Source: Adineta vaga (Eukaryota > Animalia > Rotifera). From it: a stretch of DNA of 64,000 bases. The stretch is from the NCBI GenBank assembly GCA_021613535.1, contig CP075495.1, positions 2,852,001-2,916,000 on the forward strand. Direction: 5' to 3'. Both the position numbers and the translations under genes were made by a program. The notes beneath the pieces are model-generated. The model was not told the origin of the DNA, ran no database searches, and was given only the letters and a program-made list of their open reading frames with translations. Below are positions 5,101-54,900 of the stretch, piece after piece. Every line of letters starts with the position of its first letter. Within the stretch, counting starts at the first letter, position 1.

Positions 5101-6880
5101 TATTCATCATTATTATCATCATATAGAAATGCATTTTCATTTGATATTGTAGAATATTCTTCTAATAATGTAGATGAATGCCAATAGATATTTGTATGAT
5201 AGAAAACATGTTTAGCGATCGAATTCATTCGATCGATATAGGAATTTAATTTCGGTATGAATTCATTGATATATTCAATCTGTTGTTGCTGTAAGGAATT
5301 ATGTGAAAATTGAAATAAATGTTCATTTAAAGCTAAATGTGGTTGTCCAAACCAGAAGATTGTTGTGGTTAAACTTATATTTGTTAATAAATTTTGTTTA
5401 ATACGTGTTAAATTGCCTTCAAAATATTTCATTGTATCTAAACTTGCATTCTCACGTAGACCATCATATAAACCAAGACCAATAATTAATACATGTGGTC
5501 GTATTGATGTATTAGTCGTCCAGGAATATAATAGATTATATAAATAATCATTAAATGTTTGAACGGAATAATATTGAAGAATAAAATTTTCATTTGTATA
5601 TGTTAAATTTTTCTCATGTTTATAAACAAATGGATATTGTTTATGTTGTTGTTTATGATCTTTTTCTTTATTGATTGTTGATGGTTTCTTTCGTGAAAGA
5701 TTTGAATGATATTTGATTGTATTAATAAATGTTCGATAGATCATATAGAGACGTTCATCACCGATAAATGTATAGGAAAAATCAATTTTAGTTTTATCTT
5801 GTTTTTCTTGTTTTAAACGTTGTTGTTCTTGTTTACGTGTACGTAACCATTCACCTGGATCAATACGATTATTAAATGCTTTTCGCGTCGCTAGAAGACT
5901 TTTGTCAACTGTTGACGATGATTGAGTAATTAAACGTGTACATTGATTATAATCGAGAAGATCATACCAATGTATCATACAACCTGTCGGTTGCCAAACA
6001 TGATAACGTTCAATACGACCTTCGTTTAATAATCGATGGCATGATGTAGCACCTTTGATATAACGTAATGATCCATGATAGAAAAGTAAAGCAAAGAAAA
6101 GTAATAATGCAATTAATTTAGCATTATGAATATTGAAATGATTGAGAATTGTTGAAGAATTTGATGATGAAAATGATGAATGATTATTTGAATGGGATAG
6201 AGAAGATGGTAAAGAATTTGGTGGTACAGTCGTTATCGTTGTTGTTCCTGGTGGTATGGATGCTATTGATGCAGTTGATGAACAATTCGGTGGTATTGGA
6301 TGTTTTAATGAAACTGAAGTAAATGTTGATGGATTGACATCGGAATCTATGAAAATCAAGAAGATGATATTTAAATTTTTCTTGTTTTGTTTTGTCTTTA
6401 TTGACAATTAGATTGAAAAATTTGTTGTTATTTCATAAAATATTTACTTTCGTTTAGTAATATTTTCTTTTTTCTTTCAAACTAGTTTTTAGTGTGTTTT
6501 ATTTTTGAAGTCTTAGAAGGAAAAAAACTTACGTCGTAAATTTTCTTGTGACGCCGAATAATTATGTTGATGATAATGATTACTATTTAGATTTGTAAAT
6601 GTTGATTGATCTGAAGGTAGGAAGATGTATGTCGATGGGATGAACGTGCTGGTAGAAATCTTGAATGAGTATTATCATTGGTAGAATTTTCTTTTCGATT
6701 GGATCGAGATGGTGGAAAGATTTGGGCAGCAAGGGTATTCGATGTTGTATCATATGAATGATGTCGAACATGATGTGGCGATGATAGACGATTGTTAACT
6801 GCATATGGTGCACTTTTTTGATTGGGATTATCACTAGATATGTTAGTATTGTTGGTTGGATTTGTAGATTTTGAACTCAT
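2117..6880 (-). CDS. CASD1: CASD1-like protein (SGNH-like luminal domain plus Cas1p-type multi-TM acyltransferase domain) with degenerate catalytic motifs
   Basis: Multi-exon gene joining ORFs 4404-6407, 4054-4389, 3229-4014, 2512-3156 and 2117-2374. Motifs SCHRLLNEG..VWQPTGCMIHWY, LNALCNPLLLPDDGTCC, EWxGWM-like EMRGWM, YHRWNLDRY and WFGSISLELFVTQYHIWL. The 5' exon (~6532-6880) has a frame inconsistency, so the start is uncertain. Confidence 0.88.
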
Positions 6881-9375
6881 ATTCCATCTGAAATTTTTAA
6901 AATACATAGTATGTATTTTGAAATCAACAAAAGAATAATGATTAATTTCAACATGACTGTTTTTATCTCTCTCTCTCTCTCTCTCTTTCTCGGTTTGATC
7001 GCAAAACAGATCGCTCACCGTGCAAGTAATTTGCTATTTAGATCAGGATCGCCGCTAATCAGATGTTGTCTTTCATTCCACATTATTTTCTTCTATTAGA
7101 GATAAATACACAGAACGATATTTCGTTTGTTTCTGTTGCTATTATAACAACTGATGTATTCGGTAAGTGTACTATGTCATACTTTTCTGAAGCAAACAAT
7201 CAAATTGCGTCGCCTTCAATAACGTCGTCAAAATTCGATTGTATTCTACATCATCACCATCACCACCATTTTTCAATCGGAATCAAAAAGAATAAAGGAA
7301 ACGAAGGTAAGAGAGAGACAGAGACAGAGAGAAAGCGCAAAGAACGAACTATGCAAACGACGATAAAATCTCTATTTTAATATAATTTTCTATGTGTATT
7401 TGTATGTACGTATAGTGGGCAATACGTGCAAATAGACATAGTATCATTACATTTAGGCAGATATGAAAACTTAAAGAGTACAATACATCAATAATGATTA
7501 TCATTCAGAGAAAGTATATCAACATCATCATTTTTTCTTCTTCTTCTTCGTTTTTTGTCTTATTATTTCTACCAAACAGTGTGTTGTTAAAAAGAATAAC
7601 ATGACGCAATGGAAAATGAAAGTGGCAAAGAATAACAAAAAAAATCCGTCGAACGTTGCAGTAGTAGTGAGAAAGCAAAAAAAATCTCGATAGTCAACAC
7701 AGAAGCAGGATCTGACAACGTTTGTTACTAATAAAGCCAGAGAATTTCAATGTCACTCACTCTTCCGTTCTTGTCATCGTCGAGCTTGGCCTTGTTCTCC
7801 ATGTTGTTTTTCTTTTTTTCTTCTCTCTCTGTTCTATTCTTTTTTAACACGCTAGACAACCATAACTAGGGAATCGATCAACGTCGGAACTCCTCTATAA
7901 CAACTATTTCCTGTACGAGACTAGCGTATTGATGGACACGAAAAAAGAAAAACATACAAACTATTATTTAATATTTTGATTTTTACTTGTCAAAGAGATA
8001 TTGACAACAAGAAACTCGAATGAAGCATTCTCTTTTTCTTTTATAAATATAATATTAGTAATATATACAAACATTCGTCATAAATTGTTAAAAAAGAACA
8101 AATATATCACACTTTACTTGACAAAGGTTATCATTGGAAGAGGATCATACTTGAAGAAAATGAAGTTCTTTCTTTTTTCTTCTTCTTCTTCTTTGCTTAT
8201 TCAAAAAATATCTCGTAGTGTAGTATGAAATCTTTACTCAAGGTCATTACCTTTTGTCTGTATGTTTTATATCCACTCTTACATTCTTATCTAAATAATT
8301 GTAAAAAAAAGAATTCTTCTTTGTCGAATTAATTAAAATTCTATCCTAAAAAAATATTATTCTTTTTATCTGTTAAAATTGATCTCATATGAAATAAGAA
8401 TGTTATTAACTATAATCATAACGCCGACGATAGGAAGAGAACATGTAACAACTTCAAAGACATCAGTGATAAGTGATAAAAGGGCAGGGATTCTTTATTT
8501 CTTTTTGAATGAAAACCTACGTAATATAACAAACTGATTAATCAAAGACACAATTCTTATGAGTATAGATAGCTGATAAAAGTCCTTATTAATCTATCTA
8601 GTCAGAATGCATTGCTGGCTTTTACAATTATATTATAATTTCAAAAAGGATCTTTTTAAAGTGTACTTCATATTTCCGTTACTTTATTACATATTTACAC
8701 GCGACTATCTTCATCATGTTTCGTTGTATTCTAAAATAGAATATATGTAACATAAAGAAAACTTTTCATTCGACTAACATTTCATCGACGTTTTGTATAT
8801 TGTAAAAATACGATAATTTCTTTTACTGCTCAGAATTATTAATATTAATAAAGGATGGAAGAAAAAATGACAGCACTCTGTCTGGAAATTCTTCATTTTA
8901 TCTCAAACTAATACTTCACTTTTTCGGATGTCAATAGGAATTGGAGTTTTTTTTTACTCTAAATAAATGTAAAATTATACTCACTCCATGATAGTCATGT
9001 CGATGTCATTAAATCTATCCGTTTACCAAATGAAAAAGAAGCATATCGTTTTTTCTTTAACGAAAAACAAATCATTGTTTTTCTGTTCTTAAAAGGATAT
9101 TTCATTTTATCTAAAAATAAAAACAAAAAGAGAAAAAAACTATCATAATCCCATCATAATTTCCAAATAAATAAAGTATTAGCAGTCAAATAAAAGCCAA
9201 CTGTATACAATAGTCATTTGTTACATTAGAAACAAGCGAACAAAAGAAAAACAAAACCGAGGAAGTTTTAATTACAAAATAGAATTCACGTATATTCATA
9301 GACTTGACTAGACGTGATCTATAGGAGAAAAAAACGGACACTATATATATACAAAAAAAGAAGGATTTGCTCTTT

Positions 9376-40740: not shown

Positions 40741-43700
40741 ATGGTAGACCTGAAGGATAATGTGGACACATTGTCCAAGAATGTATGTGTCTTGTATGCT
40801 TTTGAATAGTGAATAAAAGTTTGTATAAATTTGTTAGAAAAATCAAGCACGTCAAATTAATACCAATGTTGATCAACTTGAATCAATTCCCAATAAGAAA
40901 GCGTAGGTCTTTTTGAGTCATTGAAACGGATTTAAGAAAGAAAAGTTTTGAAGAGATTTTAGCCAAGTATTCATATTCATTTAGAGAAGGATGTAAACAA
41001 CGAAGAGCGATTTGGATAACATTAACTGCAAGTATAGTTACGATCGTATTAGGTGTTGCTGTTGGAGTACCAGTAGCTATGAAAATGAGTCAAAATACAG
41101 AATCAATGACTACAGCACCATCACTTGTTGCAGGTAATTACGAAATGATTTTGTTCATCTGATTGCACTAGAATTTCATAATTTTTAGCTTCTATTATGA
41201 CTACAACTTCTACTACATCAGGTCTATTGTACTAAAAGTATCATATTAATCAGCGAATTTTTGTTGACGTTTCAGTATCGTCAATATCAATGAATTCCAC
41301 AGCAAGTAAGATATATATTACTGATCATTGTGACTTGTGAGCTAAAGGCTATTGCTTATCGTCATAGGCACTTTCTGCAGTATGGATTAGAATAATCAAT
41401 GACTAGTATTTCAATGTAAATATCCTTTCTTCCTCAGCAATAGTTTCTGTAACATCTATCCCTAATTCTTCTACTGCTAGTCGTAAGTTGATGTTCTTGG
41501 CTCGACTATTTTCCTTTGTTTATGATAAACAGCAATCTTTATTTAAAACACTCATCTCTTTTGTAGCGACTTCTACGATAAGTTCTACTACTAGTACTAG
41601 TGAGTTTATTATTCGTTTTTAATTTATCTAACTGTGCGTTTATTTAACATCAGCAATAATGGGTGTATTGACCAGTAGTAAGATACAGTGTTAATTATTT
41701 TATTACTATTAGGACACCTTTACTTTCCGTAGCATAAACCTTGACTACACCGAATACTAGTAATGCGGATCTATCAGCATAGTTTCGCATACTCCTTTGT
41801 TCATTTTCTAGGTACATCATCGTCTCCATCGATATTAACTACCTCCACGAGTTGTAAGCCATATTCTAATGCATTACTCATAAATATACCTTTTCTTTCC
41901 GTAGCATTCACTTCCATTACTTCTGCAATTACAAGTATACTCCGTTGATTATGACGTTCATACTTAGTTATTAATCTTTTAGACACATCATCGACTTCCT
42001 CCTCAATAGTTACTACCACTAGCAGTATAAATTTTATTTTCCGTGAACTGTTATTCATGAATCGTACTTTTTAGCGAGTACTTTGTCCATTTCTTCGACC
42101 ACAAGTGCGAATCATTACTTATAAATTTTCTATCTAACTAGTTTTTCTTTAAGTCACAACAACACTCACACTCACACTCACAACCACAGCCACAACAAGC
42201 AGAAGTATGAAGTATCTACTTTTCGGTTCCTAGTTTGATCACTCACTTCTCCTTAGGCACGAGTTCATCGACCTCCAGCACTACTAGTACCTAGTATTGG
42301 TTATAGTTTTCATATATACCACTTTTCTTTCAGGCACATCGATAACAAGTGAAACAACAACTACATGTATGAAATACTGTTTTAAGTCTCCTATATAAAC
42401 CATCGTCCTTTTTAGCGTCTACATCGACTACTTCCAGCACTTCAAGTATAGAACATCGACTCGAATGCTTCTATACCTTTCATCTTCTTTCAGGCACAGC
42501 AACATTCACAACAAGTCAAACAACCAGCACGAGTATGGAATATTAATCTCTCCCATTCTTGATTTATGTTCTCTTTTTTCGTAGGTACAAGTTCGTCCAC
42601 TTCTAGCGCTACAAGTACCTACTACTAGTTACGCTTTTCATTTTCAATCCTCTTTTTTCAGGCACACTAACTTCAACCACAAGTGAGACAACGAGCACTA
42701 GTATGGAGTCTTTGTTCCTCAAGTCTTAGTTTAAGTTCTCATTTTTATAAGGTACAACTACGCCCACGTCCACCACCACAAGTATTCAGGAATAGTCATG
42801 CTATTGGCATTCCGATATCCTATTCATCATTTCAGGCACATCAACATCAACAACAAGTGAAACAACAACTACATGTATGAAATACTGTTTTAGTTCTCCT
42901 ATATAAACTATTGTACTTTTTAGCGTCTACGTCAACTAGTTCGACTAGTTCCACTAGTTCAAGTACGCATCATAGGTTTGAATAGGTCTTCTTTCCGCAC
43001 CTTTTTTTATAGGTACATTAACATCGACAACAAGTGAAACAACAAGCACCAGTATGGAATCTTTTTTGTTTAGTCTTTAGCTTAGCTCTTCATTTCTACT
43101 TAGGTACAAGTTCATCGACCTCCAGCACTACAAGTATTCTGTATAAGTTACCGCATCTCTTTGTGATAATCTCTTTTAGGCACATCAACTTCAACAACAA
43201 GTGAAACCAGCAGTAGTAGTATGAAATAATTTTTCTTTACCTCTTAGCTAATATTTTCATCTCCTCAGGTACAACTTCGTCCACGTCTAGCACGACAAGT
43301 ACCAAGCATTATTGCTATCTTTCATATGCAACAATTTTCTGTTAGGTACATCAACATCAACAACAAGTGAAACAACAACTACATGTATGAAATACTTTTT
43401 CAGATCGGACACATGAAAACTCGTCCATTTTTAGCGTTCACTACGACCAGTTCCAGTACTTCAAGTAAATATGGCTGAATAGAGTTTAAATATTGAAATT
43501 ATCACGTTTGAAGGCACTTCAACATCGACAACAAGTGAAACAACTGGTACCAGTACGAATTTTATTTTGTTATGTTTTTCCTTAAAATCATCGTATTTCC
43601 TTAGGTTCAACGTCGACGACCTCGACCAGTACAAGTACCTAGTTTATACTTCAAATTTCATACGTAGTGCATTTTATTTTAGGCACATCAACATCGACAA

Positions 43701-45334
43701 CAAGTGAAACCAGCAGTAGTAGTATGGAATAATTTTTCTTTACCTCTTAGCTAATATTTTCATCTCCTCAGGTACAACTTCGTCCACGTCTAGCACGACA
43801 AGTACCAAGCATTATTTCTATCTTTCATATGCAACAATTTTCTGTTAGGCACTTCAACATCTACGACAAGTGAAACGACTAGTACCAGTACGAATTTTAT
43901 TTTGTTATATTTTTCCTTAAAATCATCGCATCTCCTTAGGTTCAACGTCTTCAACTTCTAGTACGACCAGTGCAGCTCTAGGCGAATCGTTCACGTGTTT
44001 AGTTTTTTTCTTTCAAGGCACATCGACATCAACAACAAGTGAAACAACAACCACATGTATTAAATACTTTTTTTGATTGTTTTTTTTTGCAAAATTTCAT
44101 CTCTTTCTAGCATCCACATCAAGTAGTTCCAGCAGTACAAGTATGTATTGTGTACTTGGATAGTTTTTGTATGTTTTACTTGGTTGTAGGTACGTCAACA
44201 ACAACAACGAGTACTGCAAGTACAACTAGTATGACATATTGTTATGGAATTGGTATTCAAAGTTTTATATTTTTTCAGGTTCAACCTCGTCGTCTTCGAG
44301 CACTACAAGTAGAGATATATCAGTTTAGAAACTGCATATCGAATTACTCTTTTATTAAGGCACATCAACGAGTACAGCTACTACAATGACGAGTAAGTCA
44401 GACACTTCGCTAACTACTACATCTGATCCTTTTTTTTGTAGCGTCAACATCGACCACTTCAGTAACGACATGTATGATTTCACGAAACTGATTATTTTAA
44501 CGGCAATCTGATATTCTTGTATTTGCTTTAGCAACTTCTACGACAAGTCGTACTACTTGTTAGATATTTCATGTATTACACTTATGAATTGAATACATAG
44601 AATGATTTTTATTTTAGCTACAAGCAGTACAAGCACGACTAGTCGAACGACAACTACAACAAGTATGTAGTGCCGTTGTTAAATTTCACAAAAAGAAAAA
44701 CCGTGTAATATTTTTGTAGGTGTAACAACAACAAGTAAGTATTCCGTGTAGTATTTTATATTATAAAATATAAAGAACGATCAAAATAGCTACAACTACG
44801 GCAGTGCCACCAAATTTATTAGTTAATCCTGGTGGTGATGCAAGTCTTACTGGTTGGACACAAACAGGTCCATCAACTGCTATTCGAGATACGGGTGGTT
44901 TAATCAATAGTGGCTATAATCCACGAACGGGTGGTGGCATGTTTGCTGGAGGTCTTGGATCTGGTGGTTCATCATCAGGTCTTACTCAAAATGTCATACT
45001 ACTTGGTGGGCCACAAAACTTAATCGCTGCTCAACTCGATGCTGGAACATTGAAAGTTGAAATCAAATTTTATTATCAGAATTATAATAGTTTCTGGCTT
45101 TCCACGGATGAAGCTCAAGTAATTGTCACATTTAAATCAGCAACAAATGTTGTTTTAGGTACTGCCGATTCTGGAAACAAAATCTGTAATATCTATCCTG
45201 GATGGTGTTTCTATTCGAATATAGTCAATCTTCCTGTTGGCACACGAACTATTGAGTATAAAATGAATTTTATTCGCAATGGTGGAACAGACATTGATTC
45301 GTATATTGATGATGCTTCATTACGAATTATTTAA
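40741..45334 (+). CDS. Type II membrane mucin-like protein: cytoplasmic tail, TM, Ser/Thr stalk from ~41 micro-exons, C-terminal jelly-roll (FBA/galactose-binding-like) domain
   Basis: Three 5' exons give MVDLKDNVDTLSKNKNQARQINTNVDQLESIPNKKAEGCKQRRAIWITLTASIVTIVLGVAVGVPVAM. About 41 AG/GT-bounded exons of 15-51 nt follow (41189-44734), all multiples of 3 and phase 1. The terminal exon 44790-45334 is in frame with ORF 44804-45334. One micro-exon (41733-41759) carries a stop. Confidence 0.85.
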
Positions 45335-45926: not shown

Positions 45927-48900
45927 TCAATTAAATCTACCTGCAAATCCAACCATTTTTGTTTGTGTTGAAGGTACTTCTGAAGATTGTATCTCCGAAG
46001 TTGTTTCATTTATAATTGGTTCAATATGAACAATTGTTGGTAATGTTCGTGATGTAATTGGATAATTTCTTTCTCGATACCAATGAACCGATTTTTTATC
46101 CAGTACTAACAATTCAAGATCATCACGTGCCATGTGTTGTTTGATTTTATCTAAGATTGTTTCATAAGTTAATGCATGAATTGTTGTACCATTTATTTCA
46201 ATAATTCGATCACCATCACGTAAACCACAAACAGCAGCTGGTGAATGTTTAGTAACATCGGAAATGAAAACTCGGCTAAATAGAATTCAATCAATTTGAA
46301 ATATGAAAATTATGGAAAAGATTTTTCTATTACCCAAGTTTTTTTGGATCACCACATAGAAAAAAGCCATAGAATGGTGATGTAGCAAATTTTCGAACAC
46401 GACAAAGACGTGCAACAGGTGCATCGTGTGAAGATATATCCGATAATCTAGTTATCGAGCCCTCTAGAAAATGACAAATCAAATAAACGTCTGCTTTTTA
46501 ATCAATACTATGTCAGCTTACTTTCGGATGACGTAGAAATACTCTTTGGATAATGAATAATACCTGGTGATGCTGTAATTCCTATTTATAGAAGAAAACA
46601 TTCATGAAAATTTCAAACAAAGAAAAAAAAAGATGTGATTTTATACCAGTTGCAAGTGCAGGAACACTTCCACTAAGAGCTCGACTGGTAAAATTATCAA
46701 TTTGCTTTAATTGTCCCGGTAAATTTGGATAACTTGTAGCAATTTTTTGTTGATTAAAACTATCAAATGGACTAATAGAACTATTGATATCCGATACATC
46801 ATCACTTAATATAGTTGTTCGTGGTGACTGTATGGTTGATGTTAGAAATGTATTATTATTATTATTGCTATTTGATAAATTATTTATATTCGTTTGTTTA
46901 TCGCCATCCACTGTCGATGGATAAATATCTCGTGTATGACTTTCAATAACACGCATTTCAATAGATTCATTTATTCGCATTGCAGAAACAAGCATGTCTA
47001 CGACCTGAATCGGAAAGAGAAAAGAAAACTAGTGTTTTCTTAAATAAATAATAATTTCAAACGTACTTGTTCATATTTAATATTTCTGACATCAACACCT
47101 TCAACTTCCAATACTTCATCATTCACTTGTAAGCCAGCTATATCTGCTGCTGAATACTATTGAAGAAAAAAAAACGAAGAGGAAACCAAACATTAAATAT
47201 ATATATTTTCGATGTATCTTCGAACCTTTTCAACAGCTGTGATTGTATGATCATAATCACCGGTGGCACTTAGAACAAAGCCAAGACCTTTATTACGATC
47301 GACTTTGAGTACACATCGGCGAGGACCTCGAAGATAATCAAATGATCCAGTTGATATCGTTGAACGAACAGTATCTTGTATCGATGAGGCAGGTAATACA
47401 GTTGTTGTATTACTTGTCACTGTATCGAGTGATTGAGAAACATAGGGATTTTCTAATCGATTATGTCCATTCCGAAATGTTGGTGGTGATGGTGCACGTC
47501 CTTTTGTACTAGTCGTTGTTTTTGTAGTAGAATCATATTCTGCTGAAGAAAATCAAAATCAAATTCATTGTTCTTTATTATTTTTGACATCGAACGGATT
47601 TATCACTGATAAAAAATATACGAATCTCTTTACACACATTTTATCTTTCTCAACTTTTCAAGTTTTTTACTTTTCGTACTCGTTTAAATTAGAAATTCTT
47701 CTAACATAACTTCATTCGTCAAGACATTCTTCTATAGAAATATCTTATCAGAATCGAATACTTTATCATGAAAACTTTCTCAAATATGCATATTGTTTCC
47801 CTTTGATTAAACACAATAAAAAGTGCAAATTACTAATCTAATCTAATCCAATCTACAAAATATACACACTACAATTATATCTAAGTGAAATAAATATATA
47901 TACATATAACCTACCGTGGTTGTGTCATTTCTAGAGGCACATCAAGCTGTCGATAATATGCGTGCAATATGAATAATAAATAGTTGCTTTTGATCTACAG
48001 TAGTCGAACTAAACATGCAAGTTGTGCTTTTTTACTGTATGTCTGTGTGTGTGTGTCGCTATTGTGTAAAAATAACAATGTAAAGAAGTTATACTAATAG
48101 AAAAAAAACTACAAAAAATACTACGATTTTAAATAACAAATGACAACAATAATAATGATAATAATAATAATAATACTAATAGTGAGACAAAAGTAGAGAA
48201 TAATCAGATAGCTACATGCAAAAGAAGAGAAAGAAAATGTATGAAACTAATCACGAACGTTTTGATGATTTTGAATGTCCAATTTTGTGAAATAGATTAT
48301 TAATTGCATGTGGTATAGCTTTTGTTTTTGATCCTTTGGAATCTTTTGTTGATGCTTGTTGTAGTGATGTAGCGGATCGAGATAGATTCAGTCCATTTTG
48401 ACTGCCAGCTGATGTGATACTCGAACGTTGAGCATTATTTTGTGTTGGATCAAAGAATTTCAATGGTGCTTCATTATGACGGGTAGACGTCTGTACTGGT
48501 GAATGTGGTGCAGTTAAATGAAAACTAACTGGTGCTGATGAAACATTATCAGATGGTGCTTTTTGTTCAGTGATTTTGGAATTTTCCTCTTCTTCATTCT
48601 CAGAATCCGTTTCTTTCGATGTCGATAAACGAAATCCAGTAGATGGGAGATGATGAGGTGAATTATTTTCATCATGTTTAATCATACTATTATGTAACTG
48701 TTCTAAACTATCTCGTGACGATAGAGATGATGCGGTTGTAGCAGCAAGAACTGGTAATTTATGAAAACTTGCTGATGACCTACTTTTTGGAAAGATATGT
48801 TTCACTTTTAATTCGGGTTCTTTCAATGGTTTTTTTGTTCGTCTACAATAATCAAATGTTTCTTGATCGACCACGAGCATTTCTAATCGACCATCACGCT

Positions 48901-51900
48901 TGGCTTTTTCAATTTCTTTTTTCACTTTATCATAACCTAAACCTTTAGTTTTCTTGTCATTGATTTTCAATAATATATCACGTGATTGTAAACCAGCACC
49001 TTCGGCTATGATTGCGGTTCGACACGTAATATTAATGGATATTCATAATCGGGTTCTTCACTTAATTCAAAACCAAATGTTGCTGATTGTGTTCCATCAC
49101 CATTTGTTGGATGTAAATGACAAAGACGTAATGTATAGGAAAGTTCTTTATTTCGCTGTTCTAAAAAAAAGCAGCAGAGAAAAACAAAGAACAAAAAGAC
49201 ATGCCAAACTAGATACGGATCATAAAGCAAATCGGGATCTTCGAATAATAAGAGATAGAGAGAAAAAGAGAAAGTTCAGAAAAGAATGAGTGAGCTAGTC
49301 AATTGGCAAAAATAAACAAGAGTAAATTATCAAGCCAGGAAAACATAGCTATAATTAAAATAAATCAAGCAAAACTTGCCTTGAGTATACATGTTTCTAC
49401 ATAGTTGGAAAAAAATGTTCACTAGTTTTAGATATATGGTAATGATCATTAGAGTCTTTTATTGAAGATTAACGTCTCGAATTATTATTCTTCGTAGTGG
49501 TAGTAGTGCTGCTGCCGCCGCCAACGGAGGAGGTAGACTTGCCTCGATCTTAAATAAGAGAGAAAAAAAGAAAGAAAAATCAACGAGACAATTTTAATGA
49601 GTTTATTAGAGTAGGTTTATTTAGGTGAATAGTGGCGTTGTTCAGTGTCAAGAAATAAGCGGGCATTCAGTGTCAAGCTTGAAGAAGATGTGAAAAGACA
49701 ATATGAATTGACTAATCCTATATCCATCCACAACGGCAGCAGCATAATGCACAGTACACCAATGGCGATAAAGAAGGAGAAAAATAATAAATATGAGGAG
49801 AATTGTATGCTTTTTTTTCTTTTATGAAAATTGATTATTATTGATAAAGTAGGGCAGAGAGAGAGAAAGAGAAAGAATGAAAGAAAAAGCTCATTAATAA
49901 GCTATTGAACCATTATTTCAATAGTCAGTTAAGAGGACATTCCTTTTTTTTTAAAGTCATGCATAAGTATCCGTGAGCATTTGGCAAGTGTTGGTCAAAA
50001 AGCTTCAGATACGAATTCGAAATAAACAAGATATCAAGCAAATCAATGTTTAATTTGTATATTTTACTTACTTTGATATTCTTCAACAGCATTTGCACCA
50101 CGAGTACTAGGTTCTCCTCCTCCAATACTATCATTATTTCCTACAGTATTGCTATCATAACTATCTAGAGAAGCATTTCTTGGATTTGACATAGATGATT
50201 GACTATCTTTCTTTGCTTGTTCTGAATCCGATTGATTTATTGATTGTCCACGAACAACAAGTTCAACACGTTTTTGTTGTAATGCTTCTTTAACTAATTT
50301 GACTGTATCTTCATAAGTTGTTTCAGTTACAGATTTACCATTGATCGAAAGAAGCGTATCATTAAGAAGTAAGCCAGCTCTTCCTGCCGGTGAATTTTTT
50401 TCAATTTGACATATAACATATGGTGGTGGAGCTTTACCACTAAGTGCAAAGCCAGCTGTACCTTCTACTGATGGTTGTAGAACACAAACACGCGTACCCG
50501 GTACAGATGTTGGTGATGATGATAAAGGTGGTGCTGGTGCAGCTTGTTTACCTGATAATGATGATGTTGTTGAACCTGCACGTGGTACAGTAATTGGATC
50601 ATTTATAGAACGAATGCTACTAGCTTCTTTTTGTTCAGCTGGAAGAAAAAATAACGATCGTATGACTAAGTCGATAGTAAATAGAATTCATTATTATTGA
50701 ATAAGATACATGCAAAGTGTTAGTTTTGTTACATAGAAGTGACATGCAATAAAAAAGAAAAGAAAAGAAAAGAGAATGACGAATGTGTTTATATGTTTCA
50801 ATTTTTTTTGTTCATTCAAGCAAAAGTAGTGCAGTTATTTTTCTTTTTTTTTCAATGATAAATATACAGAAATACAAAGACTAATGAATCTAGAAGTTTG
50901 TGAAGAAAACCACATACACACAAGATCAATGTTAGTCATGCAGGTTATAAAAACAACAATTCTATGATATTTGTTGTGACATATTTTGCCTACTTTGTTC
51001 TGTTTCATTAGGTAATTTATGTTCAAATATTGGTTTCCAATTCAAAATATTCTTTTCTTGATAAATTTTATATCGTTGCATATCACTTTTTCTAATTAGA
51101 ATTAAATCAATACTAACATTTGATAATGATAATTTTCGAATAAGAATTTTCACATCATCATGTGTCATTTGTTCGACATTTTTTCGATCAACAAATAGAA
51201 TAACATCATCTTCACGTAAGCCAGCATTATAAGCTGGAGAATCTTGTTCAACTTGATCAATTAAATGAAGACCATTTTGATAACGTAATAAAAGCCCATA
51301 GCCATTATATGTTGGTTCTTTTTTCAAAAGACAATGTTTAACTTCAACAGTACCGTCACCATCCGTAAATAAAGTATTCAAATATTTTGTCAAATCATTT
51401 GTAGTTGATTTTGGTGAATCAGCTTTTGAACGAAGATTTGGTAAGTCACTAGCCGAATCTTTTGCTGATCGATTACGACCAGTTGATTCTAAGAAAACAA
51501 AGAAGAAGAAAAAAAAATCATATTTAGATTATGTTAACACGAATAAGAAAGAGAAGAATGATTTTACCACTCGAACTACTCAATATTTGTTGTTCTCCTG
51601 TCTCGTAGTCGGGTGGTGTAAAATTAGTGTTTTCGAGTGTACCTCTTGTTTTCGATTGATTTCTTTTGACATCTTCAATTAATTCTAAATATTTTGGATC
51701 ATTTACAACTGTTAATTGTAATGGTTTTTTGCTTTGCATCATTCGACGAACATCTTCGTGTACAGCATTTCGAACATCAACATCATTAACTGTTAATATA
51801 CGATCACCATCACGTAAACCAGCTTTATCGGCCATAGATGATGATTGAACATTACTGATAAAATGTGTTTGAATTTGAGTATCACCTTCGGGAATAAATG

Positions 51901-54900
51901 AATTAAAATCCAGACCTAATGCTTCTTTCAAAGTAACATGACGAATATCTCTTGGATCAATCATATCCGATGCTAGAGAAAAAGAAGAGGAAAATGTTAA
52001 ATAGTACGATTCAATCAAGTCAATTTGAACATACGTTGTTCAGTTAATGAACTTTTTTGTCCTCGATTAACAGCAAATTCTCGTGCTGGTGAATGACTTG
52101 GTGATCGACTTTGTGAACGTGGAGATTTGGTGATATTTTCATCTGATATTGGATTTGTTATTCCAACTGATAATGGTCCACCAGGAGTATTCGAACTATT
52201 TCCACGATCAGGTAATGGAGAACGTTGAGAACGAATAGTTGATGTATTTTGAGGTTGATCCGGTACAAAACGAAGTTGATTATTATTCAGTGGTTCACGT
52301 GTTATATCTGTTGTTAATAATGATTGAGGAGTTTGACCTTGATTAAATATTTTATCATTAGTTTATTACTAATTTTTATTTGAAAATCAATACAAACCTG
52401 CTTGTTGACGACTGAGCGATTCAGATCTTGATGATGATGGCACTACAGGTGTTCGTTCTTTTTCTACTTGTTTAATTGTTGGTGAAGAAGCCGGTGACTT
52501 CTTTCTTGCTATAACTAGATTAATTAAACCAGAATTGGTTAATAATTGACGAATTTCTTGTGATACTTCAGAAAATTCAATTAAACGAACATCTTTATCA
52601 TCTATTTTAATAAGCCAATCATCAACTCGAAGACCAGCGAGATCAGCTTTTGTTCCTTTAGCAACAGCTGTTATTATATATTGTAATGGATCTTGTTGTT
52701 TAGTTAATTTTAAACCGACAGGACTAGTTTCAGTTGGTTGCATTAATTGTATATTATGTAATTCATAACCATAATCTTTTAATTCTGATAGTGGCATTGT
52801 AGCTAAACGAAAAGAAAAAGTTTACTAAATGATAAAATTCTTTGAAATATTAGATTAAAGAAAATAACGTTCAGAGAAGAAAAATGGTAAGCTGTTATAG
52901 ATAGGTATCAGTCAAATCCAATGTTGAGAAAGGCAAAACAAGAAATACACCGCAAACACACATAGTGTTAGTATATAAACCACAAATAACCAAGCTGTGC
53001 ATATATATGCATGGCTCACCGAACGCCGTTTTTCCTAATGGAATTGGTGTTGATTGACTTTCTGTTGAACTTTCTTCTGACGAATGTTTTTCGTGATCGT
53101 CGTTGTTTTCTTCTTCTTCTTCTTCTTCTTCATCATCATTATTCTTGTCAAGGGTATTCGATTGTCTTTGTTGTAGACTAGCAGATCTAGCAAGAAGTTC
53201 ATTTAGTTTCTCATCTGCAGTCTTGTCTTGAATATTCTCTTTTTTCTCATGTTGAAGCCAAGAATTTGTTGGTGGTTCGTCCGTATCCGTTTCATCATCA
53301 ACTGATTCAATAGGTGAATAAAATGAATCAGCAGCAGATTTTTTTGTTGCTTGAGAATCAGTAACTGAAAGATTTTCATCGCTATCCGCTTTTTCAAGAC
53401 GACGAGCTTGAACTATTTGCTTCACACCGATTGATTTCTCATTTTCAGATCGAGGATCGTCACTATCAGTCTTTTCTAGACGACGAGCTTGAACAGTTTG
53501 CTTCATACCGATTGGTTTCTCATTTTCTGATCGAGGATCGTCACTATCGGTCTTATCTAGACGACGTGCTTGAACAAGTGTTCTTGTAGGTAATGCTGAT
53601 GGAAGAGATAATCGATCACTTTCTGACATTGTATCATCACTATCGGATTTCTCGATACGACGAGCTTGTACAACGGTTCTACCAGGTGTCAAAGATGTAG
53701 AAGATTGTCTGTCCGTATTGGGATATGTTGAAGTCTGTGTTCGATTGCTATTGTTGAAATTTGGATTTCTATCTGTTGAATCAGAAGTATTTCCAAATGA
53801 AGGTTTTGTTGATGATTCAAGCAGATTTGATTGTGGATTTTTGTGATTGATAGAATCAGAAATATCTTCTTCATGAGAATGTTCTGAAATGTCAGATAGA
53901 TCATCGTCGGTATCAGTATAACCACCTGAAGATACATTAGCTTTAGGTGGTTTACTCGGAACGCTCATTGCTTTCGATGGTCCTGTACAGTTGTATTTAT
54001 ATTTTAGTTATTTTTTTCATATATACATAGTTTTTTTCGAAAAAAAATCTATTAAAACTATTTAAACAAAACTTACCGAGACGAGTATCAACTTGATTTG
54101 TTGGAGAAGTTTGTGAATTTCCTGAGAAAAAGAAAGATAGTAACAAAATCGAAATCAAAGATCATGGTAAAAATCGAAATGTACCTTCATCATAATCACG
54201 TTGTAAAGGTGTAATAGGTACAGCAGCTGGAATATTTTGAATAGTTTGATTTGTTCGGATATTATCACGATTAGTATCAGCTGGTCTACTTTGATTTGGT
54301 AAACTATCTCGTTCTTCATTTGATGAAATTGGTCGCGACGTACGTTGTTTATCATCATTAAGATTTGATGTTGCATTTCCAGGTTGTTGTGATGATGTTG
54401 GATTACTAAATCCAACTTGTAAAGGTTTAAATGAATCTTCTAATGAACTATTACGCCCTTTGACATCATCAGCATCTATGACGACGACGAAGAAGAAGAA
54501 GAAGAAGAAAAACGATTGATTTATTTGAAAAAGTATGAAGACATACCTGGTCGTTGATCGCGTGATGTTGAACGAATGGATGAGTCACCACTAGCTGGTA
54601 ATTGAAATTCGTCACTAGATTTTCCACTTGATACGCCCCATGATGATCGATCAGCTGTAGCTGGTCCAACACCTTGCAAGATCTGTCCTTGTTGTGATTT
54701 TGATGGATATCGATCATTATCAAATTGGGGTGAACGTTGATCATATCGGTCATTGGGTGTTGAGGTTGAAACTGTTTCTCTTGCTCGATTAGAATTATCT
54801 GTTTCATCATATGATGGTTTTTGTTCATTATTATATTTATTGAAAAGTTGTTCTAAAGCTTGAGTTGGTGGAACTGTTGCTGATGTGTTTCTATCGATTA

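Follow-up and report, generated by a model that had tools for sequence, protein, structure and literature searches.

Between positions 40741 and 45334 of the window (the whole 64,000-nucleotide stretch of Adineta vaga DNA that was analysed) we recognised a gene model with an unusual architecture. It is a genuine gene of a bdelloid rotifer, and we consider it likely, with a probability of about 0.68, that it is functional and encodes a 730-aa type II stalked membrane protein, in which the length of the stalk is set mainly by the number of cassettes at the DNA level and the exons are normally all included. The full model contains 45 exons, 41 of them micro-exons in a single run. From the N- to the C-terminus, the predicted protein comprises a short tail, a signal-anchor helix, a Ser/Thr stalk and a 180-aa jelly-roll domain.

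All exons lie on the forward strand. Exon 1 (40741–40782), read in the sequence, holds the ATG and 14 codons of the cytoplasmic tail and ends at a GTATGT donor; its N-terminus resembles that of the A. steineri model P0002. Exon 2 (40838–40902, 65 nt) continues the tail, and its peptide DQLESIPNKK matches DQHESIPSRN of P0002. Exon 3 (40985–41133, 149 nt) encodes a basic KQRR followed by a hydrophobic signal-anchor helix of about 25 residues, ends in phase 1 and has homologous TM exons in a second copy on contig C5 of the same genome and in A. steineri. By inspection, the N-terminus is a hydrophilic stretch of about 40 aa followed by an internal hydrophobic helix, from which we infer a type II topology with a cytoplasmic tail of about 40 aa and one TM helix. 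The micro-exon array (41189–44734) sits exactly between this phase-1 TM exon and the last exon (44790–45334), which is also in phase 1 and, according to translation, searches and predicted fold, encodes a TTT linker, the 180-aa head and the stop codon. The single micro-exons encode peptides of 4–17 aa; sequence searches at the protein level covered the products of the TM exon and of the head exon. For a transcript or annotated protein of the gene itself, the ranges 99–315 aa and 213–679 aa (the latter with P0171 as query) yielded A. steineri and Rotaria models only.

The ORF scan found no long ORF across 41189–44734, in agreement with the first-pass annotation, which had described this region as free of meaningful ORFs and divisible into exons bounded by AG and GT. 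Our parser, based on dynamic programming and allowing any phase, recovered 41 exons there, all 41 divisible by three and in phase 1-1, as had been claimed; the smallest measures 12 nt instead of the 15 nt given earlier. Fifteen exons have 30 nt, 13 have 39 nt and four have 33 nt, and the others lie between 12 and 51 nt. The number of micro-exons is best given as 39–41, since the parse is ambiguous at some exons near the 5′ end: the 12-nt exon 41368–41379, the exon 41654–41677 before a 134-nt intron, and 41905–41934, which could alternatively extend to 41943. The 42 introns measure 39–134 nt with a median of 50.5 nt, and the acceptors are TAG, CAG or AAG preceded by pyrimidine tracts. Together the micro-exons amount to 1392 nt, or 64 % of the coding region, and specify a stalk of 464 aa with 209 Thr and 184 Ser (85 %), very close to the roughly 1.4 kb and 465 mostly Ser/Thr residues estimated before. 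The stalk is organised in 23-residue double repeats and, as a long tandem-repeat region dominated by Ser and Thr, qualifies as a mucin-like (PTS) domain. It is presumably O-glycosylated.

The core of the array (42257–44308) has a higher-order structure. TRF detected a 166-nt period, a repeat search found 12 copies spaced by 166–177 nt, and comparison of the cassettes resolved 12 units of about 166 bp, each made of a 39-nt exon, an intron, a 30-nt exon and an intron, so that the alternation of 39-nt and 30-nt exons noticed earlier is borne out. The longer exons encode peptides of the STSTSTTSETTxT type and the shorter ones of the STSSSTSSTT type. Recent duplications spanning two to three cassettes are present in the core, and two 227-nt copies (43174–43400 and 43677–43903), lying 503 nt apart, are 92 % identical. 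This pattern indicates that the array was enlarged through DNA-level duplication of a 166-bp cassette of two exons and two introns. Differences in stalk length between the two genomic copies and between species likewise correspond to DNA-level gains and losses of cassettes. The ancestral state was probably a set of phase-1 S/T micro-exons, which the second genomic copy and other Adineta-like genomes still show. In the A. vaga lineage this set probably grew as unequal crossover or slippage duplicated the cassette again and again, the introns being copied together with their exons. Given introns of about 50 nt, each intron would most likely be spliced out as a unit of its own, so that the mRNA normally contains every exon, and stalk length would then be set mainly by cassette copy number in the DNA, not by regulated exon skipping.

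The first-pass annotation had suggested looking for paralogues with the same layout, and one was found in the copy on contig C5, which has 52 % amino acid identity and about 12 micro-exons and is probably an ohnologue. The same TM exon, phase-1 micro-exons and phase-1 head exon are present in this copy and in a syntenic A. steineri orthologue, and an alignment of three genomes matches the terminal micro-exons, splice sites included. The same layout was seen in two Adineta-like Logan contigs with at least 16 and with 5 micro-exons; P0008 and P0012 stem from Logan contigs of unspliced genomic DNA. The annotated bdelloid proteins P0171, P0028 and P0002 follow the order tail, TM, S/T region and head. 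In the A. steineri model P0002 an early micro-exon is joined directly to the last exon and at least seven well-formed micro-exons are omitted; this join may reflect genuine skipping and not a fault of the annotation. A genome-wide search with a 30-nt phase-1 S/T exon pattern gave 26 matches, 9 of them at this locus, and reversed-pattern controls gave 41 and 43; because the reversed controls match more often, the pattern is unusable for counting paralogous arrays.

The first-pass annotation had further proposed a variation similar to that of schistosome micro-exon genes (MEGs), with in-frame skipping of any exon subset changing the length and O-glycan load of the stalk. Such skipping, whether regulated or stochastic, would produce a graded series of stalks differing in steps of 10 or 13 residues. 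We regard this as unlikely. Any subset of exons can indeed formally be skipped in frame, as all are in phase 1-1 and divisible by three, and among the 903 possible donor–acceptor junction codons none is a stop and 73 % encode Ser or Thr. Symmetric phase alone is no pointer to skipping, however, because it is a precondition for any exon duplication to survive. The weak donors reported earlier were confirmed in relative terms. The reference used was the homologous micro-exons of relatives, as a matrix derived from the ORF-supported introns of the window was too noisy; against (G)|GT[AAGT], the array donors reach a mean match of 2.0 vs 2.6–3.6 in the relatives (MWU p = 3e-6, with copies that are not independent of each other), and those in the core cassettes deviate strongly from GTAAGT. 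This weakness relative to homologous exons agrees with skipping, but it is not independent evidence because the donors derive by duplication from two founder exons. The at least seven well-formed micro-exons left out of P0002 also speak for skipping. Exon skipping is generally associated with short exons, weak splice sites and longer flanking introns (PMC6142364); the first two features favour it here, whereas the introns of about 50 nt argue against it, all the more as those of schistosome MEGs measure 0.1–5 kb. If skipping did take place, it would be the first MEG-style protein variation based on splicing outside flatworms, and with introns of about 50 nt, where intron definition is expected.

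Constitutive inclusion of all exons is instead suggested by the selection acting on them. Among the repeat copies, pN/pS is 0.28–0.35 in the inferred frame vs 1.7–6.7 in the other frames, and because these synonymous-biased differences are confined to the inferred frame, the micro-exons are genuinely coding. Exon similarity among cassettes is 0.70–0.73, compared with 0.60–0.63 for introns and 0.52 for shuffled sequence. None of the 41 exon copies has a stop or a frame break despite a divergence of about 27–30 % between copies, and purifying selection thus holds all 41 exons intact. These data also bear on a second alternative, in which the array is mostly a relic: in the functional mRNA the head exon would directly follow either the TM exon or the earliest micro-exons, the arrangement of model P0002, and the majority of the cassettes would be pseudo-exons that are never used. 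Short models of this type are indeed produced by gene predictors in relatives (P0002, P0003), and the core donors are weak. Unused sequence should nevertheless have accumulated stops and indels, as the introns have (32 of the 42 contain in-frame stops), yet AG/GT boundaries, frame and open reading are kept in all 41 units at about 30 % divergence, the low pN/pS is found in the inferred frame only, and recent cassette duplicates remain intact. We therefore find it quite improbable that most of the array is a relic.

The parse itself was compared with randomised sequence. The real sequence scored 393.5, while 15 dinucleotide-preserving shuffles scored 13–49 or gave no chain and resembled the real array in no respect, with only 2–8 symmetric phase-1 exons per 31–37 and 37–42 % S+T; for the reverse complement, the parser returned no chain whatsoever. 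That the array is an A/C-rich repeat merely resembling exons, a chance parse or a low-complexity artefact can practically be dismissed, for although the region is indeed a tandem repeat, the shuffle and reverse-complement controls fail completely, selection is specific to one frame, exon–intron boundaries are conserved in other genomes and the array falls exactly between two phase-1 exons.

Regarding the head, the earlier description as lectin-like holds at the level of the predicted structure (pLDDT 84), which adopts a fold of the lectin/CBM type. Its closest matches are the Fbs1/FBXO2 SBD structures 1umh, 2e32 and 2rj2, with TM scores of 0.70–0.73 and Foldseek E-values of about 1e-8, and the bacterial CBM61, CBM16, CBM4 and CBM22 jelly-rolls, with E-values of 1e-6 to 1e-7; sequence identity to these domains is 14–17 %. 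ESM Atlas lists an FBA cluster at 0.90. In hmmscan at E<=1, no Pfam FBA, CBM or MAM match to the head was found, and the likeness to FBA (PF04300) is thus one of fold and not of family membership. The sole match at this threshold was Fim-adh_lectin, which at 18.5 bits stays below the cut-off of 25, and membership in the fimbrial lectins was rejected. Chains of meprin MAM appear in the Foldseek list with E about 1e-6, and the homologue P0022 carries a MAM domain name in UniRef; as the Pfam search gave no MAM match, membership in MAM is considered doubtful. In a profile search over the full 180 aa, 1407 proteins reached E<=1e-3, of which 315 also reached E<=1e-10. Outside rotifers these sequence relatives are mostly bacterial and form an unnamed jelly-roll family. 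The Pontibacter protein WP_311580462.1, for example, has three copies of the domain with 26–29 % identity and has the motifs NLLxNPG...GW and GTRxI...DSYxD in common with the rotifer head. The rotifer domain is probably a carbohydrate-binding head of bacterial type, and it presumably binds a glycan.

The gene would thus represent a bdelloid surface receptor that combines a probably bacterial-type carbohydrate-binding head with a eukaryote-style intron-rich stalk. Its 41 consecutive small exons with introns of about 50 nt confront the spliceosome with an extreme natural case. How micro-exons are dealt with under intron definition, and whether weak donors lead to skipping or retention, could be tested directly on this array. 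The micro-exon architecture also explains the truncated and inconsistent models that predictors give for this gene family in bdelloid genomes.

MEGs are operationally defined by micro-exons whose length is below 70 nt and a multiple of three (Olson et al. 2020, PMC7653826), and have been described as restricted to platyhelminths (PMC4350168; Philippsen et al. 2015). All 41 array exons (12–51 nt, divisible by three) fall under the former rule, and 41 of the 45 exons of the gene form one run, so the MEG-like architecture claimed in the first-pass annotation stands under this definition (PMC7653826), in a gene apparently unrelated to the schistosome MEGs. It extends the micro-exon-gene architecture beyond platyhelminths to a rotifer, with an apparently independent origin by cassette duplication. 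Both systems have a long run of tiny symmetric exons between ordinary 5′ and 3′ exons, a product of the surface or secretory pathway, and a gene structure with which gene finders struggle. They differ in their introns (0.1–5 kb in schistosomes vs a median of 50.5 nt and a maximum of 134 nt in the rotifer), in protein size (an alignment of 87 S. mansoni MEG proteins has a maximum of 189 residues, whereas the rotifer protein has 730 aa) and in the N-terminus, which is a cleaved signal peptide in the MEGs and, by inspection, a signal anchor here. In schistosomes differential splicing yields a pool of variants, which for the rotifer gene is hypothetical. The rotifer micro-exons encode only a Ser/Thr spacer derived from a duplicated cassette, and the sequences are presumably unrelated.

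A matching logic is seen in the type II membrane lectins DC-SIGN and L-SIGN, receptors whose neck consists of repeats, and in fungal adhesins such as Flo, Als and Epa with their Ser/Thr repeat stalks. In all of them an anchor in the membrane or wall and a repeat spacer variable at the DNA level hold a carbohydrate-binding head off the surface. Their repeats, however, lie in single exons or intronless genes, in contrast to 10–13 residues per exon in the rotifer, and their heads are C-type lectin or PA14 domains instead of an FBA/CBM-type jelly-roll. With Fbs1/FBXO2 the likeness is in the jelly-roll fold; the domain of Fbs1 is tied to an F-box, while the rotifer head is stalked and, by predicted topology, extracellular. 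Units of exon plus intron are duplicated together in spider Flag silk, in the PEVK exons of titin and in the 54-bp exons of collagen. The rotifer array shares with these genes the tandem duplication of exon plus intron and the frame-preserving exon sizes, but it is in phase 1 instead of phase 0, encodes a mucin-like product and is built from much smaller units, with exons of 30 and 39 nt and introns of about 50 nt.

The genome under study comprises 100.8 Mb in six contigs with a GC content of 31.6 %. An ORF scan of positions 41189-44734 of the window bore out the first-pass annotation in that this stretch has no meaningful ORF. We parsed it by dynamic programming with a free choice of AG acceptor, GT donor and phase, demanding only an open frame running to the stop codon at 45334. 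On the plus strand the parser recovered 41 micro-exons, located at 41189-41221, 41276-41305, 41368-41379 (12 nt, ambiguous), 41438-41482, 41567-41599, 41654-41677 (ambiguous, with a 134-nt intron after it), 41812-41853, 41905-41943 (ambiguous, alternatively 41905-41934), 41983-42024, 42075-42104, 42154-42204, 42257-42286, 42334-42366, 42416-42445, 42494-42532, 42585-42614, 42662-42700, 42752-42781, 42836-42874, 42924-42962, 43013-43051, 43104-43133, 43180-43218, 43269-43298, 43346-43384, 43435-43464, 43514-43552, 43605-43634, 43683-43721, 43772-43801, 43849-43887, 43940-43969, 44018-44056, 44111-44140, 44190-44228, 44279-44308, 44360-44392, 44442-44471, 44532-44558, 44618-44662 and 44720-44734. 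The earlier description of about 41 tiny phase-1 exons was thus right almost to the number. All 41 have a length that is a multiple of 3 and are in phase 1 at both ends; 15 measure 30 nt, 13 measure 39 nt, four measure 33 nt and the rest fall between 12 and 51 nt. Their combined length is 1392 nt, or 464 residues, of which 85 % are Thr (209) or Ser (184). The 42 introns have a median length of 50.5 nt, their T content is 43 % versus 21 % in the exons, and 32 of them contain an in-frame stop. The parser score was 393.5, whereas 15 shuffled versions of the stretch, with dinucleotide composition preserved, gave 13-49 or no chain, with just 2-8 symmetric phase-1 exons out of 31-37 and a Ser plus Thr content of 37-42 %. 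The reverse complement of the stretch yielded no chain.

The array exons are coding, as three independent lines agree: selection is frame-specific, exons are more alike than introns, and the layout is conserved. Selection was assessed on 11 of the 39-nt exons and 12 of the 30-nt exons. Substitutions among exon copies cluster at synonymous sites of the inferred frame (39-nt class: pS 0.48, pN 0.14, pN/pS 0.28; 30-nt class: pS 0.59, pN 0.21, pN/pS 0.35), while the remaining two frames give pN/pS of 1.7-6.7. No exon copy contains a stop or a frame break. Pairwise identity between cassettes is 0.73 and 0.70 for exons versus 0.63 and 0.60 for introns, and 0.52 for shuffled sequences. Across three genomes, the final three micro-exons can be aligned together with their splice sites.

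The supported gene model starts with exon 1 (40741-40782, beginning at ATG), exon 2 (40838-40902) and exon 3 (40985-41133, encoding KQRR and then some 25 hydrophobic residues) and ends, after the micro-exons, with the last exon (44790-45334), which encodes the head and the stop codon; all lie on the plus strand and sum to 2193 nt, or 730 aa plus the stop. By inspection, the exon 3 helix with its hydrophilic N-terminus of about 40 aa reads as a signal anchor, which would make the protein type II with a cytoplasmic N-terminus. The order of tail, transmembrane (TM) segment, Ser/Thr stalk and head recurs in the annotated bdelloid proteins P0171, P0028 and P0002. Homology was searched with two exons, the TM exon and the last one, and the close homologues of the gene are all bdelloid (Adineta steineri, Rotaria spp.).

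Regarding the head, a C-terminal jelly-roll of 180 aa, the last exon matched no family in Pfam or NCBIfam and no sequence in PDB. The AlphaFold model, based on a 13-sequence alignment, is an all-beta sandwich (pLDDT 84, pTM 0.82). Its top Foldseek matches are sugar-binding domains of Fbs1/FBXO2 (1umh, 2e32, 2rj2; TM 0.70-0.73, E ~1e-8), followed by phage tailspike modules, CBM61, CBM16, CBM4/22 and meprin MAM domains. ESM Atlas returned an FBA cluster (0.90) and DUF642 (0.89), and the clusters nearest to the head are bacterial or rotiferan. At the level of the fold, the lectin-like head proposed earlier is therefore upheld by both searches, and the head presumably binds a ligand. Among 1.84 billion representatives, profile searching recovered 1407 relatives at E<=1e-3. 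The segment 44792-45331 and proteins P0054, P0061 and P0039 belong to a large unnamed domain family without a Pfam or NCBIfam model. The named non-rotifer relatives are bacterial secreted multi-domain proteins, among them Pontibacter WP_311580462.1, with three tandem copies (26-29 % identity) and a T9SS tail, and a Verrucomicrobiae MAG protein. A bacterial origin of the bdelloid head exon is plausible.

The array has a TRF period of 166 nt, and a repeat search found 12 copies spaced 166-177 nt apart. In each cassette, a 39-nt exon of the type STSTSTTSETTxT, whose Glu is conserved, is separated by an intron of ~50 nt from a 30-nt exon of the type STSSSTSSTT, after which comes a second intron of ~48 nt. 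Higher-order duplicates of 227 nt (92 % identity, spacing 503 nt, equal to three cassettes), 125 nt (86 %, spacing 335 nt) and 113 nt (86 %, spacing 508 nt) are superimposed. Within 42494-44056, the single Glu in T-S-E-T is kept in 10 of 12 39-nt exons, with Gln there in an eleventh; it gives the otherwise pure Ser/Thr stalk one acidic residue per ~23 residues.

The search for paralogues with the same architecture, proposed as a check in the first-pass annotation, recovered a second copy at G000:C5:14416267. Its head is 52 % identical, its TM exon ends in phase 1, and about 12 phase-1 Ser/Thr micro-exons of 15-90 nt precede a phase-1 head exon. It is partly syntenic, with fragments of a paralogous PDZ gene adjoining upstream in the other orientation, and we take it to be a probable ohnologue. 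At the A. steineri locus (L005, CAJNOG010000053.1) synteny is complete on both flanks, and the stalk combines phase-1 micro-exons with one 165-nt Ser/Thr exon. The large downstream gene in the window (45930-52821, minus strand) matches, with 57-96 % amino acid identity, the part of L005 that holds a PDZ-rich 2660-aa A. steineri gene. The distance from TM exon to head exon is 3.66 kb here versus 1.76 kb in A. steineri and, given this and the ~12 micro-exons of the C5 copy, stalk length has demonstrably been altered by gain and loss of exon-plus-intron cassettes in DNA. Two Adineta-like Logan genomic contigs carry at least 16 and at least 5 phase-1 micro-exons. In Rotaria socialis (L004:21-293, CAJOBQ010003987.1), a single uninterrupted exon of at least 273 nt encodes most of the stalk, and an intron of ~1.36 kb and a 30-nt micro-exon come after it. 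Stalk intron density thus differs sharply between bdelloid genera, which makes the density of micro-exons a feature of the Adineta side, at its most extreme in the array gene.

Short runs of phase-1 Ser/Thr exons (30-81 nt, introns ~50 nt) also occur elsewhere in this genome, at G000:C3:3481163-3481399 (L019:2164-2400), at L013:2427-2800 and 6007-6506 (G000:C5:4303426, with a tandem twin at 4307006), and on the minus strands of loci L017 and L016. These loci suggest that micro-exon stalks are a recurrent style there. NHL repeats (PF01436) are extremely abundant, with 2148 first-look candidates; 150 of 150 scored above the Pfam cut-off.

Regulated or substantial skipping of micro-exons could also tune stalk length, and all 903 donor-acceptor combinations would leave a sense codon at the junction (Ser or Thr in 73 %). 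However, symmetric phase lets cassette duplications survive and is therefore no pointer to skipping on its own. The donors (e.g. GTATGA, GTATGG, GTACCT, GTACCA and GTATTC) are weak, as had been noted before, matching on average 2.0 of 5 positions of (G)/GT[AAGT] (1.7 in the core), against 2.6-3.6 in homologous micro-exons of the C5 copy, A. steineri and the Logan contigs (p = 3e-6, the copies not being independent). This weakness was, however, inherited from two founder exons, and purifying selection acts on all exons. With introns of ~50 nt, as in the array, splice sites are reportedly paired across the intron, so that failure leads to retention. The A. steineri model P0002 (L005:8600-10110) joins micro-exon 8600-8638 directly to the last exon, leaving out at least seven well-formed phase-1 Ser/Thr exons (L005 9317-10039); this gap reflects either a skipped isoform or systematic mis-annotation of the family, in which P0001 and P0003 are further truncated models. 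Across eukaryotes, skipping is accompanied by short exons and weak splice sites, both present in the array, but also by longer flanking introns (PMC6142364), whereas the array introns are ~50 nt and those of schistosome micro-exon genes (MEGs) 0.1-5 kb. We consider skipping unlikely, and less likely than cassette variation in DNA with mostly constitutive splicing. The architecture is extreme and the question of skipping is directly testable.

By the operational definition that Olson et al. (PMC7653826) give, the array gene is a micro-exon gene, and the MEG-like character first proposed holds to that extent. MEGs have been described as platyhelminth-restricted (PMC4350168), and the array gene does not belong to the flatworm families: its introns are short (median 50.5 nt, unlike the schistosome range), its product is large and signal-anchored, and its micro-exons encode the spacer only. 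Full-text literature searches returned nothing relevant on rotifer or bdelloid micro-exons. The nearest functional analogues are repeat-stalked lectin receptors (DC-SIGN/L-SIGN) and adhesins (fungal Flo/Als), whose repeats lie within single exons or intronless genes, whereas the stalk repeats of the array gene are split over micro-exons.
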